Source: Macrostomum lignano (taxonomy: Eukaryota). From it: a stretch of DNA of 56,851 nt. The stretch covers positions 1 to 56,851 of the forward strand of contig NIVC01002399.1 of the NCBI GenBank assembly GCA_002269645.1. Direction: 5' to 3'. The position numbers and the translations under genes are program-made. The notes below the pieces were generated by a model. The model saw only the letters and a program-made list of their open reading frames with translations, was not told the origin of the DNA and searched no databases. Shown in pieces: positions 1,242-40,905 of this stretch (its first letter is position 1; the number at the start of each line of letters is the position of its first letter).

Positions 1242-1353
1242 CTGCTGAACAGGTCAATATTGAAGAAGACGTACTCCCCGTTGATGAAGCCCAGCTCGTG
1301 AGCCTTGATCATGATCTCTCGGACAGTGTCCGGGTCGGCGCAGAGTACGACAA
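1242..1353 (-). CDS. Conserved internal exon of a natriuretic-peptide-receptor / receptor guanylyl cyclase ectodomain (candidate shared 'constant' exon); the gene continues left of the window
   Basis: Acceptor atcctttttatttcag, then phase-1 entry TT GTC GTA CTC TGC... = VVLCADPDTVREIMIKAHELGFINGEYVFFNIDLFS, then donor AG|GTGAGA. Closely resembles human NPR-C [36 protein letters not shown]. Not in the ORF track. TM and cyclase exons are not visible in the window. Confidence 0.92.
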
Positions 1354-2130
1354 CTGAAATAAAAAGGATAGAAAAATCAGTGTGTATAGGCAATAAAATT
1401 TGTTCTAATCAATTCTAATCCAGTAGGGTTGAAGAAATGCCTCTTAATCCTTAGTTCTACTATATGAGGATTCAGCCTCAATCCCCACCCTCGTGAGTGC
1501 ACTGACCGTGTCGTTGGGGTGGCATTGTGCGATTTACAATAAAATGCAATTAAAATTAATGAAAAGCGAAGGGGTTTGATTTTCCTGAGGATTTCCATGC
1601 GACAGATATTTTTTCAATTTGATTGCCAATTAATTATCAAAATGTAAAAAATGGCAAAAAATTCTACCTCTGATTAGGATAAGAAAGATGATTTCTACAT
1701 GTAGATAAACTCTTTAAATCACTTTTGCGATTCATTTTACTATGGCATACTTGATGAATACCTTAAGCTTGTAAAAACTTGTCTAGTAACCGCTCGTTGT
1801 TGAAATTGAATCAGCGCTAAAATAAGGCGCCGATAAACAAATCATATCAGTGTTGGTCGCCTCTTTTGGCGACGAGGCAAATTGAAAATAGAGCAAGATC
1901 GGAAGTGACACTACGCCTCGAAGGGATGTCAGATTTCCTGCTTTTCAATTTTAGCGAGATATTTTTTGGGATCAGAAAATCTCATATAATGGGAACTTTT
2001 GCCTTAATGCTCGTTACTGACGGTAGAGAAAGCTGCCCCCTTAGCACTCATTGAATGAATTCGAAAGGCCCAAAATGTCATTTCCAACTTGGGGTGACAG
2101 AGTAATGGCATTATCATTCTAGCAGGAGAA

Positions 2131-2198
2131 GAGAGGAGAGGAGAGGAGAGGAGAGGAGAGGAGAGGACAGGAGAGGAGGAGAGGAGAGGAGAGGAGAG
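2131..2198. repeat. (GAGAG)n microsatellite
   Basis: Directly visible pentamer run with one or two interruptions. Confidence 0.95.
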
Positions 2199-2533
2199 AA
2201 TATACTCACGATCTTAGCCATATTTTAGAGATCACTTGAGACTATAGACGCATGCTATAAAAGAAAGTGAGATCAGATCGAAGTATTGAGAAGGATAGAG
2301 AGAGAAGTGAGTTCCTCATAGTTTGCAAGCCTTGCATTCAACGGAGACTCTAGTGGGTAGAGCTATAAGCTGGTGCTATAGTCTCAGTAACTATAGTCTG
2401 ATGGGTGTACTTAAGGGTGAAAAGTCGGCCCCAGGAAGAGTATTGTGCGTCGCCTTGCCCTAAGCTCATTGAAAAGCCACCACATCGGAAAGACGTTATG
2501 AAAGCTCCAAATAAAAAAGGGACATTGACCTAC

Positions 2534-2956
2534 GCCTAACTTCCTCTCTCATGCAGCGAAATACTTCGCTTTGAAAGTGCTTATTGGTGGCACTGTAGGG
2601 CTTGACTCTCAGTATGTATCTGTGCTGGTGGCTGAACCGGTTCTCGATCGTAGTGCGCAACAGCCTGCTGAACGTCACTCTCGTCTCGTCTCTCTGCTTG
2701 TGAAGTTGAGTCTCGTCATCTGGCACGTAGATTATTAGTAGATTCTGCTGCTGCCTTGGCAACCAGTTGTATCGCTGAAAAATGGCTAGCAGCATGTTCT
2801 CAATGTCGAAGTTCATAGGGCCTACTCGAATCAAGTTATAATATTCCTCTTTGTCTTCTAGGTTAGCCGCTGCGCCAGAGGTGATAATTGGTTTTTGATA
2901 CAGGTAGTACCGGTTGTAGCGAGCCACCGCCGCGAGACAGAACGTACAGAATGGAC
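2534..2956 (-). CDS. ANF-receptor cassette 1, exon b
   Basis: Acceptor ttttaaattccag|GT CCA TTC TGT gives G-PFCTFCLAAVARY...PIITSGA...EYYNLIRVGP...YNW (NPR motifs GPxC, AR, ITxGA, RxGP, W). Donor C|GTAGGT, phase 1. Confidence 0.88.
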
Positions 2957-3102
2957 CTGGAATTTAAAATAATTGTTGAAAGTACTTTACAATGCCAACC
3001 ACCATGACAAAAATGACCTCAGAACGGTAGAAGCGTTTCGTAGATAGGAAATAACTTGACACCCTTATGTTGGGCAGAGAGGTACACGAGTCAATTAAGT
3101 AC

Positions 3103-3452
3103 GGGATAGCGACGTTTGCCAGCCGACGTTTGCCCAGCGGGACGTTTGCCAGCCGACGCTTGCCCAGCGGGACGTTTGCAGGCGGTAATTGGTTAAATAA
3201 TTATGCCCTATCTAGGCCTAAATGTACTTGCATTTGAAAACTGCGGACATAGCACCAATCTAATGCCACCTCGCTCCCTACTACTGCTACTAAATATACT
3301 GGTTACTAAGAAACTACTGCTCACTAGAGCGCACTTCGTCTTCTTGATATTTTAGGTAGGTTTTAGTAACAGGTGCCAAAGCAACCGATGTAACCAAAAC
3401 TGAGCTGGCAAACGTCCGCTGGCAAATGTCGGCTGGCAAACGTAGTAGACCC
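3103..3452. mobile_element. Foldback/MITE-like element with inverted subterminal repeat blocks, in the cassette-1 intron
   Basis: Left block gacgtttgccagccgacgtttgcccagcgggacgtttgcc (3110-3180) is mirrored by ggcaaacgtccgctggcaaatgtcggctggcaaacgt (3408-3443). Ends are GGG...CCC. No clear TSD. Confidence 0.6.
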
Positions 3453-38052: not shown

Positions 38053-38952
38053 GTGTTAATTTAATTACAGGCAGCGGGCTGTGTGCACCCTGGCGCACTT
38101 TAAGCGACATTGTCACACAACCGACGAGAGGCATTGCTGACCATTCCGCCGGCTCCCCTGAGCAGACACACAAGCGCGCGGATACGTACGCAGTCATACG
38201 CACAGGCACACACTCACACAGGAGTGTACAGCGGCACTAACTTTATTTACCGTCTGACATGTACACTTCACTGTGCCTTAGGGGTTGGCCTTCAAAGGCG
38301 TTAATTGCACGAGCAGAGCCTAGCCGAGATTCCAATTTTGGAATCGAGCCTGGGCCGCCTGGCACTCAAGACTCTCCCTATCACACAAGACGTCAGTGCA
38401 CAGGTTGATGCGCTCGATCACTCCAAATCTGCATCAGTCAGACCTAAGCGTGAGTGTGCGGTGAGCCAGCTTCCGCGATCCAAAAATTAATTTTCCACTC
38501 CTACCCATTCCAGCTTCTGTAAGGAGAGATGATGCTTCAATTAATTATCCAAGTCTCGTGGATTTTACGCTCTTACAGCTCATCTGATGAAAAGAAAAAA
38601 CCACCCCCAGGGAAATGAAAAGGCGAAAGAGATAAGGAAAGGAGAAAATGAGATGAATTAATTTCTTACTTTGATTACATTCATACAGCGCAGCGACCTG
38701 ACTTCGCTCGCACGTGATTTGCGTTGCTAATTACTCCCGAATTGTCATTTGATAAACAGAGCGTGCTGGGGCTGAAGTTTGCGGCCGAGCATGATGAAGG
38801 CTCTATGGTGGGAAAGCTTTTTATCCTGGGCTGAAAATTCTCTTAAGTTTCTGGCCTGATTATGAACGAAACATGAATGTAGGAGTTGAAACAAAGTCTG
38901 AAGTGCGTAACAGATTTTGGTTATAGGGAGTCCTAGAATTACTGAAGTATAG

Positions 38953-39238
38953 ACAGATAGACAGGCAGGCAGACAGACAGGCAGACAGACAGACAGACAG
39001 ACAGACAGACAGACAGGCACGCAGGCAGGCAGGCAGACAGACAGGCAGACAGACAGACAGACAGACAGACAGACAGACAGACAGACAGGCAGGCAGACAG
39101 ACAGGCAGGCAGGCAGACAGAAAGACAGGCAGACAGACAGACAGACAGACAGACAGACAGACAGACAGACAGACAGACAGACAGACAGACAGACAGACAG
39201 ACAGACAGACAGACAGACAGAAAGACAGACAGACAGAC
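38953..39238. repeat. (GACA/GGCA)n microsatellite
   Basis: Direct inspection. Confidence 0.96.
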
Positions 39239-39737
39239 CTTCTCCAGTCAAGCAAACAGCCCGGAGAGCTAGGCGAGGAGCATCAAAAAATATTCATAAA
39301 CATGTCGTGCCAGTTAATCCTATGAGGTCATCCATGAAGCCTTCAGTATTAGCGGCTGTGCCAACAACAAAATTATGTTTCTATCCAACACAGGAGAAGC
39401 AGACAGGTCATCTTGAGAGGCAACAAGAAGTTGCTTTCGATGGAGATTGATTAAATCTCGATCATCTAGGATAAGGCCACCGGGCCTCAGTCAGTATAAT
39501 AAAATCGGTCATCCAAGAGGAGTCCGCAATCATCCAGTCTGTCATGATGATGTCAGGCATAAATAAGCATCATCCTGTAACACGGTTAAAGGACTGTAGA
39601 CAGTAAATACCTATCTCTGACATACATGTACCATTTTTGTTAATATGTGACCTCATACGCCCGTATCTCTGCTATTTTTAGCAAACAGCAGCAGGCTTGC
39701 GCAGGTGATTTTACTGTAGTGTAGACTGTGCCAAATG

Positions 39738-40500
39738 GTAATTACCCCTAGTATTACAGATGAATATTTCTGTTTACCTACAGGATAATTACCCCTAGTA
39801 TTACAGATGAATATTTCTGTTTACCTACAGGATAATTACCCCTAGTATTACAGATGAATACTTCTGTTTACCTACAGGATAATTACCCCTAGTATTACAG
39901 ATGAATACTTCTGTTTACCTACAGGATAATTACCCATAGTATTACAGATGAATATTTCTGTTTACCTACAGGATAATTACCCATAGTATTACAGATGAAT
40001 ACTTCTGTTTACCTACAGGATGATTACCCCTAGTATTACAGATGAATACTTCTGTTTACCTACAGGATGATTACCCATAGTATTACAGATGAATACTTCT
40101 GTTTACCTACAGGATGATTACCCATAGTATTACAGGTGAATGCTTCTATTTACTTACAGGATAATTACCCATAGTATTACAGGTGAGTGGCCTATTTACC
40201 TACAGGATAATTACCCATAGTGTTACAGGTGAATGCTTCTATTTACTTACAGGATAATTACCCATAGTATTACAGGTGAGTAGCCTATTTACCTACAGGT
40301 TAATTACCCATAGTATTACAGGTGAGTGGCCTATTTACCTACAGGATAATTAGCCATAGTATTACAGGTAAATGCTTCGATTTATCTACAGATAATTACC
40401 TATAGCAGTACAGGTTAAGTGCTCTATATTTACGTACAGATAATTACCCCTAGTATTACAGGTGAGCGCTGCTAATTGTCTACAGATAATTACCCCCTGG
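39738..40500. repeat. 47-bp minisatellite (ataattacccctagtattacagatgaatatttctgtttacctacagg), ~16 copies
   Basis: 47-bp period verified between 39785 and 39832; runs up to the cassette-4 donor. Confidence 0.94.
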
Positions 40501-40516
40501 TGCACCACCTACTCAC

Positions 40517-40905
40517 CCAACGGAGATGTTATAAAAATACGGATTCATCCAGTAGTTCAAATAGTAAGGATTAACGGTCTCCAGACCGGGCCTTCCATTT
40601 CTCTCAGCCGGAGACACCTCCCTGTACCACTTGACGTCCTCATAGATGGCCTTAGTTTCCATTCTCGAATACAGCAGGCGAAACAGAGAAGCATTGGGGG
40701 TGTTTGACAGCTCGCTGCCCACCCTATTCCAAGCCAGTTGGTAAGCAGGTTCGATCAGCACCGCATTGACATAATAGGAAGTGGACCTCGGCACTATCAG
40801 GTAGAGGTGCAGCCCGTTGGTGCAAGACTGTCTGTCGGCAGTCGCACCAAATGTTGATGCAGTTAGCACCAACATTAGAATCTTGGCGAAACCTGTTGTA
40901 GCCAT
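40517..40905 (-). CDS. ANF-receptor cassette 4, exon a
   Basis: ATG at 40905. MATTGFAKILMLVLTASTFGATA signal peptide, LHLYLIVP, LIEPAYQLA. Donor GG|GTGAGT, phase 2. a+b = 805 nt (268 codons + 1). Confidence 0.82.

Follow-up and report, generated by a model that had tools for sequence, protein, structure and literature searches.

How many receptors can be made from a gene that has one body and several beginnings? This question is raised by a stretch of DNA from the flatworm Macrostomum lignano (contig NIVC01002399.1, 56,851 nucleotides (nt), analysed over its whole length and hereafter called the window). On its minus strand, from 40905 to 1242, the window carries seven exons encoding N-terminal half-domains of the ANF-receptor type, and one exon encoding the segment that follows. 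The original prediction was that these exons form variable cassettes, here called heads, that feed one receptor backbone. This reading held up: a duplicate locus has a single gene body, a junction between head 3 and this body is found there, the head types are conserved in paralogues, and a CCAAT box precedes each head. Our analysis thus supports the view that several alternative 5' head cassettes feed one constant gene body. We consider it likely that the window represents the 5' two-thirds of one NPR-A/gcy-28-like receptor guanylyl cyclase gene with four alternative 5' heads.

The four units, numbered 1 to 4 by increasing distance from the constant exon, lie in the order 5'-h4-h3-h2-h1-3' on the minus strand and span about 38 kb. 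Head 4 is taken as the 5'-most unit because a separate gene, similar to BAHCC1/TNRC18, ends upstream of it at 43299, at a distance of 2.4 kb. The exons of the locus are as follows (a slash marks the splice point).

40517..40905, minus strand: head 4 exon 1, with an ATG, a signal-peptide-like start, 129 codons and a phase-2 donor, GG/GTGAGT
36735..37150, minus strand: head 4 exon 2, with a terminal phase-1 donor, T/GTGAGT
26824..27631, minus strand: head 3, a single exon of 269 codons from the ATG to a phase-1 donor, G/GTAAGA
13296..13645, minus strand: head 2 exon 1, with an ATG, a signal-peptide-like start, 116 codons and a phase-2 donor, GG/GTAAGT
7128..7471, minus strand: head 2 exon 2, with a terminal phase-1 donor, G/GTGAGG
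3552..3852, minus strand: head 1 exon 1, with an ATG, a signal peptide, 100 codons and a phase-1 donor, G/GTGAGT
2534..2956, minus strand: head 1 exon 2, with a terminal phase-1 donor, C/GTAGGT
1242..1353, minus strand: constant exon, 112 nt (VVLCADPDTVREIMIKAHELGFINGEYVFFNIDLFS), with a phase-1 acceptor and the donor CAG/GTGAGA

All four heads have their own ATG and a hydrophobic, signal-peptide-like stretch (assigned by eye only), and comprise 231-269 codons. Their lengths (724, 694, 808 and 805 nt for heads 1, 2, 3 and 4, respectively) are all 1 mod 3, and each runs in frame into the single acceptor TTTTTATTTCAG/TT at 1353. The exon maps therefore agree with the predicted coordinates and phases of the same-strand cassettes, all of which close, as claimed, with a GT donor in phase 1 at the equivalent residue. 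The cassettes had also been described as uninterrupted, which was not the case: only head 3 consists of a single exon, while heads 1, 2 and 4 are each split by an intron (595, 5824 and 3366 nt, respectively). These internal introns occupy three distinct sites: one, in phase 1, follows LLLG, and the other two, both in phase 2, follow QFSG and NISVG. The locus thus has the tandem, same-strand, ATG-bearing units, the phase-matched donors and the single constant set of a variable-first-exon gene, but three of its heads contain internal acceptors and are not single-exon, acceptor-free units. The predicted junction 30-mers are as follows.

Head 1 and constant exon: GAGAGGAAGTTAGGC/TTGTCGTACTCTGCG
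Head 2 and constant exon: CTGCCCAGTACTCCG/TTGTCGTACTCTGCG
Head 3 and constant exon: CCACCAAGTTCTCCG/TTGTCGTACTCTGCG
Head 4 and constant exon: GCAGCGGCAAGAGCT/TTGTCGTACTCTGCG

The acceptor of the constant exon has the strongest polypyrimidine tract of the locus. A tblastn search of the window, for which P0187, P0001 and other full-length receptors served as queries, found this one constant exon and no exon for a transmembrane segment, a kinase-homology domain or a cyclase, in agreement with what had been noted about the DNA between the cassettes. The rest of the gene was sought at a duplicate M. lignano locus (L002, NIVC01001022.1:177274-236200), which extends about 25 kb beyond the left end of the window; an annotation of the DNA on that side had been proposed with the original prediction. 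In L002, head 4 exon 2, head 3, head 2, head 1 and the constant exon are followed, in this order, by one set of downstream exons (38633-48927). This set encodes the remaining ectodomain, the transmembrane segment, the kinase-homology domain and the cyclase, and is present once. NIVC01001022.1 and the window are collinear and share 94-99.7% of their nucleotides; the window therefore belongs to M. lignano, and probably the two are copies of one duplicated region. Redundancy of the published assembly is known (PMC5730564).

The product of such a gene is represented by PAA73242.1 (A0A267FJR9, P0191, BOX15_Mlig025214g3; 1166 amino acids), which was reached by a profile search after a HMMER search started from P0001 had exposed the M. 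lignano relatives. Word-indexed homologue searches were lossy (1, 41 and 2 matches), and the full HMMER search of representative sequences was more productive. PAA73242.1 consists, in order, of head 3, the window's constant exon, the remaining ectodomain, the transmembrane segment, the kinase-homology domain and the cyclase (PF07714/PF00069, PF00211). Its N-terminus matches the window's head 3 with 97% identity, and its constant exon is identical. An ANF_receptor domain is thus associated in one gene (L002, PAA73242.1) with one transmembrane segment, a kinase-homology domain and a C-terminal cyclase, as in receptor guanylyl cyclases.

In PAA73242.1, head 3 is spliced to the constant exon over about 25 kb, past heads 2 and 1. 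The GenBank annotation of this M. lignano assembly is made up only of RNA-seq-based assemblies (StringTie/TACO and a mapped de novo transcriptome, with TransDecoder open reading frames; PMC5730564), and this protein is therefore RNA-derived evidence for the joining of head 3 to the constant exon. It contains, at the duplicate locus, the equivalent of the junction from 26824 to 1353, one of those for which a search had been suggested. A second instance was found in a different sample: Logan contig L001 (SRR28338163, 1677 nt, encoding P0001), from a paralogous or orthologous locus, has a head of the head-3 type joined to the constant region with no introns. It reaches the end of the ectodomain and then runs into a retained intron starting with GTGAGT.

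Heads 1 and 2 were 100% identical between the window and L002. Head 3 showed 13 synonymous and 9 non-synonymous differences, which corresponds to a ratio of non-synonymous to synonymous rates (dN/dS) of about 0.2 by a rough estimate. More generally, the identity between the two copies is a mosaic (99.5-99.9% near heads 1 and 2 and downstream of head 3; 87-96% near heads 3 and 4), with many differences in repeat length. Gene conversion, mixtures of haplotypes and homeologues, or assembly effects are possible causes of this pattern.

Are all four heads related to each other? Pairwise identities were about 22-23% or undetectable, and did not exceed about 25%. With Pfam ANF_receptor (PF01094), head 1 gave an E-value of 8e-17 and head 2 one of 1e-9, with a match that crossed the internal junction; head 4 (2e-5) fell just under the cut-off and head 3 gave no match. 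Sequences of the head-3 and head-4 types were then taken from relatives, assembled into small alignments and compared with canonical heads by hhalign; each type gave a probability of 97.4% and an E-value of about 1e-11. Judged by these profile comparisons, heads 3 and 4 are genuinely homologous to the canonical heads, though divergent. When a profile made of all the heads was run against the six-frame translation of the window, it recovered the seven head exons and nothing else.

Head 1 is the most canonical, NPR-like head. The ectodomain of the head-1 isoform aligned end to end with that of human NPR-A (E-value of 5e-55) and also matched NPR-C (4e-50). By this alignment, head and constant exon meet near residue 208 of mature NPR-A, immediately ahead of the Cys213-bearing strand. 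The first intron of the vertebrate NPR genes probably lies at this site. Heads 2, 3 and 4 keep a cysteine that matches NPR-A Cys164, whose partner is the cysteine encoded by the constant exon; head 1 of this locus lacks it. The head-4 types of the window and of its paralogue both lack the two cysteines of the first conserved disulfide (DSxC...GPxC).

All four head types were also found outside the window and its duplicate. The constant region exists in M. lignano in at least three paralogous versions, that of the window locus (W), A (P0043) and B (P0044), with mutual identities of 62-77%. Heads of type 1 occur on A and B (P0043, P0044), at B a type 4 precedes head 1 (P0045), and P0105 has a type 3 followed by a type 2. 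The paralogous heads were 31-56% identical to those of the window. For head 4, the values were 42% for exon 1 and 46% for exon 2 compared with P0045, with a colinear splice junction; head 2 exon 1 was 44% identical to P0105; and head 1 exons 1 and 2 were, respectively, 39-41% (P0044, P0187) and 48-56% identical to their counterparts. Since all four types are present in paralogous loci at this level of identity, they predate the duplication of the array and have stayed open ever since. Furthermore, the constant regions of P0001 (head-3 type) and P0043 (head-1 type) are 92% identical, indicating that heads 1 and 3 are found on essentially one backbone.

Promoter-like motifs were found at a similar place before each head, in the form of the following NF-Y-type CCAAT boxes.

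41027..41035, plus strand: CCAAT box of head 4, AACCAATCA, 122-130 nt upstream of the ATG
27820..27828, plus strand: CCAAT box of head 3, AGCCAATGA, 189-197 nt upstream of the ATG, conserved in L002
13834..13842, plus strand: CCAAT box of head 2, GACCAATGG, 189-197 nt upstream of the ATG, conserved in L002
4027..4035, minus strand: CCAAT box of head 1, GGCCAATCA, 175-183 nt upstream of the ATG, conserved in L002

The consensus RRCCAATSR occurs 13 times in the 56.8 kb, and 4 of these 13 sites are located 122-197 nt before the ATG of a head, while others precede the ASC and TRAPPC4 genes nearby. For every one of the four heads to have a site at such a distance by chance, the probability is about 1e-5 to 1e-7, as estimated from the density of sites with a window of distances that was chosen post hoc. 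The presence of a box before every head favours, at the level of motifs, a separate promoter for each head, an arrangement known from Pcdh and UGT1A.

From these data, we propose that transcription would begin at one head, each head probably having its own promoter. The terminal phase-1 donor of the chosen head would then be spliced to the constant acceptor at 1353, and the heads lying downstream would leave as part of the intron. The outcome would be up to four full-length receptors with a common C-terminal half of the ectodomain, transmembrane segment, kinase-homology domain and cyclase, which would differ in the first, N-terminal half of their bilobed ligand-binding domain of the ANF-receptor type. 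We infer that heads 2 and 4 are in use, and that the choice of the head is made by the promoter.

Several observations weigh against this scheme. Most directly, we retrieved for this locus no transcript or annotated protein in which head 1, 2 or 4 is joined to the constant exon; head 1 was seen joined to a constant region in gene models of paralogous loci only. Exact look-ups of the predicted full-length isoforms with heads 1, 2 and 4 gave no match, though one differing residue is enough to miss in such a look-up. As the annotation pipeline applied a TACO isoform-fraction filter of 0.75 and removed alternative transcripts (PMC5730564), missing isoforms in the annotation mean little. The acceptor of head 1 exon 2 (2956) is in phase 1, as are the terminal donors of heads 2-4, so that an upstream head could join it in frame, which would give a one-and-a-half-headed protein; we see no sequence feature that explains why this acceptor should be skipped. 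Two older UniProt models chain two heads in one protein, indicating that mis-splicing or mis-annotation does occur: P0045 (A0A1I8JKT3) consists of head 4, part of head 1 and the constant region, and P0105 (A0A1I8F652) of head 3 and head 2 exon 1. Both are probably annotation artefacts caused by the multi-head layout, yet they preserve the order of the heads. In L002, the final 40 nt of head 4 exon 2 are replaced by 23 nt, which introduces an in-frame TGA and a phase shift before the conserved donor. Either one copy at least can do without head 4, or the L002 assembly is wrong at this place. The lesion lies at about 2150-2185 of L002 (36735-36775 of the window), and the replacement resembles a slipped copy of CCATGACCGC. 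The CCAAT boxes are promoter-like motifs and not mapped transcription start sites, and trans-splicing of a spliced leader (SL) is common in M. lignano, affecting about 39% of the genes (PMC5730564). Finally, an AlphaFold2 model of the head-3 ectodomain, built on an alignment of 21 rows, was too poor for structural confirmation (mean predicted local distance difference test score (pLDDT) of 53.8, and below 50 across the head) and was left unused.

Could only heads 3 and 1 be functional, heads 2 and/or 4 being decaying, unexpressed relics of first-exon duplications? The lack of RNA evidence found for heads 2 or 4, the disruption of head 4 in L002 and its Pfam score below the cut-off would all fit with this. 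However, both heads have intact open reading frames, canonical and correctly phased splice sites and a CCAAT box upstream, and head 2, like head 1, is 100% identical between the two copies. Types 2 and 4 have also been kept as open reading frames, at 42-46% identity, in paralogues whose constant regions are at 62-77%, which is far beyond what would survive neutrally; and minor isoforms are dropped by the annotation pipeline. We therefore find it unlikely that these heads are relics. We are equally doubtful of a scheme in which all heads are used but derive from one long transcript, started upstream of head 4 and resolved by SL trans-splicing or by mutually exclusive splicing. The frequency of trans-splicing in this species, the fact that about 7% of its assembled transcripts are polycistronic precursors (PMC5730564) and the AG dinucleotides found shortly upstream of every head ATG speak in its favour. 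Yet an NF-Y-type CCAAT box stands at a promoter-typical distance before every head, as it does before neighbouring genes, and we found no strong polypyrimidine acceptor upstream of the head ATGs. In-frame stops occur 6 (head 1) and 3 (head 4) codons upstream of the ATG, and a gene of the opposite strand, coding for an ASC-type channel, is present between heads 4 and 3.

Unspliced heads read on for 7-37 codons past the donor before reaching a stop, as they would if heads 2-4 were independent small genes encoding secreted decoys made of a head only. But the alignment with NPR-A indicates that a head is one half of a periplasmic-binding-protein-type fold, the other half of which is encoded by the constant exons. 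In addition, splicing of head 3 to the constant exon has been demonstrated, and all heads, those of the mussel Mytilus included, have their phase-1 donor at the equivalent residue. Such decoys are hence very improbable. The possibility of four complete tandem receptor genes with missed downstream exons, to which we give practically no credit, was ruled out by the tblastn search, with its single constant exon and no transmembrane, kinase-homology or cyclase exon, and by L002, which has one downstream set after head 1. Four alternative heads on one gene body thus remain the preferred reading.

The layout recalls the clustered Pcdh and UGT1A genes, in which tandem 5' units, each with an ATG, a signal peptide, a promoter and a donor, are cis-spliced to constant exons, the downstream units being skipped. 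The M. lignano locus shares with them the tandem units on one strand, a promoter-like element for each unit and one set of constant exons. It differs in that its units are only four, three of them with two exons and internal acceptors, and in that these are ancient and barely alignable, whereas Pcdh and UGT1A units are recent paralogues. Furthermore, the splice point of the flatworm gene cuts within one structural domain rather than between domains, and the families are not homologous. What is unusual compared with known systems is the number and the extreme divergence of the heads, together with a cut through a single binding domain. With respect to the proposed function of the head swap, the best analogy is offered by FGFR IIIb/IIIc, where alternative exons exchange half of a ligand-binding domain and thereby give different ligand specificities. 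In FGFR, however, the exons are internal, mutually exclusive and set by splicing factors, and the fold is that of an immunoglobulin, while M. lignano would use first exons and a fold of the periplasmic-binding-protein type. The vertebrate NPR-A, -B and -C have the same order of domains as the M. lignano receptor (ANF_receptor, transmembrane segment, kinase-homology domain, cyclase), but there the ligand specificities are provided by separate genes and not on one shared gene body.

The closest parallel within the same receptor subfamily is gcy-28 of Caenorhabditis elegans, after which NCBI calls the mollusc relatives 'gcy-28-like'. Its isoforms gcy-28.c and gcy-28.d are driven by separate promoters, with broad expression for one and expression in the AIA interneurons for the other (PMC9249223; PMC3842693). 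They have distinct start codons and a common 3' end, and were amplified with different forward primers and one reverse primer (PMC9249223). Our comparison is limited to promoters, start codons and primers, and what can be said about the extent of the alternative ectodomain comes from these primers (PMC9249223). Within the reach of our literature searches, no report was found of four heads that are at most about 25% identical, nor of whole head arrays duplicated into paralogous loci. The two arrangements are probably homologous. The original prediction knew of no description of such a layout for the family; this stands for the multi-head array, as we found no multi-head receptor guanylyl cyclase locus in the literature, but not for alternative first exons as such, which we found for gcy-28 only and for which separate promoters and starts have been published (PMC9249223).

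We also looked for several heads in other animals. In Mytilus galloprovincialis, they were found at the locus of an 'ANP clearance receptor' (L003, UYJE01004723.1).

10001-10714: first Mytilus head
19061-19741: second Mytilus head
45760-45870: Mytilus constant exon, 111 nt

Both Mytilus heads are single exons with an ATG and a signal peptide, both end in a phase-1 A/GTAAG, and both lie upstream of one constant exon homologous to that of M. lignano. Unlike the divergent flatworm heads, they are 76% identical, which points to a recent duplication; the annotated 387-amino-acid model uses the first one only. No second head was found within the 10-kb flanks of the Aplysia, Gigantopelta, Lytechinus and Kerria loci, a reach that is too short to be informative. 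Clusters of isoforms from the trematode Dicrocoelium, from Trichinella and from a mosquito had one head per cluster, as expected from clustering at 90%. Ruditapes philippinarum (L008, 7275-20897) has a different and more complex layout than the flatworm and mussel loci, in which a single head precedes two sets of constant ectodomain exons, one after the other, and the annotation splits these into three separate short genes. In Gigantopelta aegis (CM027794.1, L005 10098-11379), the constant exon is directly followed by a tandem array of at least 10 units that translate to the last 18 or so residues of this exon, i.e. an intron minisatellite derived from an exon. Taking together the flatworm (with at least two to three paralogous arrays), the bivalve and, probably, the nematode gcy-28, one may tentatively ask whether head arrays on one cyclase body are an old, conserved route by which protostome receptors of the NPR/gcy-28 type achieve diverse ligand recognition, though we think this somewhat doubtful.

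What would four heads on one backbone mean for the receptor? In the structures of NPR-A and NPR-C, the first 200 residues or so hold most of the contacts with the hormone and within the dimer. We infer that the heads would differ in ligand specificity. As these receptors dimerize and bind their ligand at the dimer interface, heterodimers are conceivable, and co-expressed heads could, if the proposal is correct, combine into 10 head pairs. Invertebrate receptor guanylyl cyclases are mostly orphans, and their new specificities are usually ascribed to the duplication of whole genes. The present locus suggests another route: by the choice of the first exon, a receptor would exchange only the first half of its binding domain and keep its signalling body unchanged. 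The four heads with their common backbone would also provide a natural series of domain swaps with which to map the half of the fold that sets the choice of ligand, in a flatworm for which transgenesis and RNA interference are available. Finally, since gene models show one isoform (PAA73242.1), fuse two heads or begin at the constant exon, as many mollusc models do, the receptor repertoire of flatworm and mollusc species is likely mis-counted.

Besides the receptor gene, the window contains the following genes.

43299-47580, minus strand: BAHCC1/TNRC18-like gene, with Tudor, BAH and SH3_TNRC18 domains, broken up by repeats in the coding frame
51222-51749, minus strand: TRAPPC4/synbindin gene, with a CCAAT box at 51871
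31707-35078, plus strand: sodium channel gene of the ASC/DEG/ENaC type, nested between heads 4 and 3 on the opposite strand

The ASC gene consists of two large open reading frames (positions 1-249 and 269-454 of Pfam ASC) split by an intron that is filled with a 16-nt minisatellite (32887-34004), and has its own CCAAT box at 31536. About 20 large tandem arrays (micro- and minisatellites) are spread over 12659-50989 and make up, by a rough sum, about a quarter of the window. Examples are (AGAT)310 at 17568-18808, a 22-mer repeated 110 times at 14396-16814, a 30-mer repeated 40 times at 45053-46252 and, within the intron of head 4, a 14-mer repeated 60 times at 37202-38056. Such arrays yield long spurious open reading frames in every frame. 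The intron of head 2 contains an apparently intact P-element-like transposon (7927-11433, plus strand, opposite to the gene), with perfect terminal inverted repeats of 32-33 nt (7935-7966 and 11394-11425) and an 8-bp target-site duplication, GTTTTGGC. Its transposase is encoded by an intronless open reading frame of 936 amino acids (8239-11049) with THAP, helix-turn-helix, RNase H and GTP-binding domains. The element is absent from L002, indicating that its insertion was recent.

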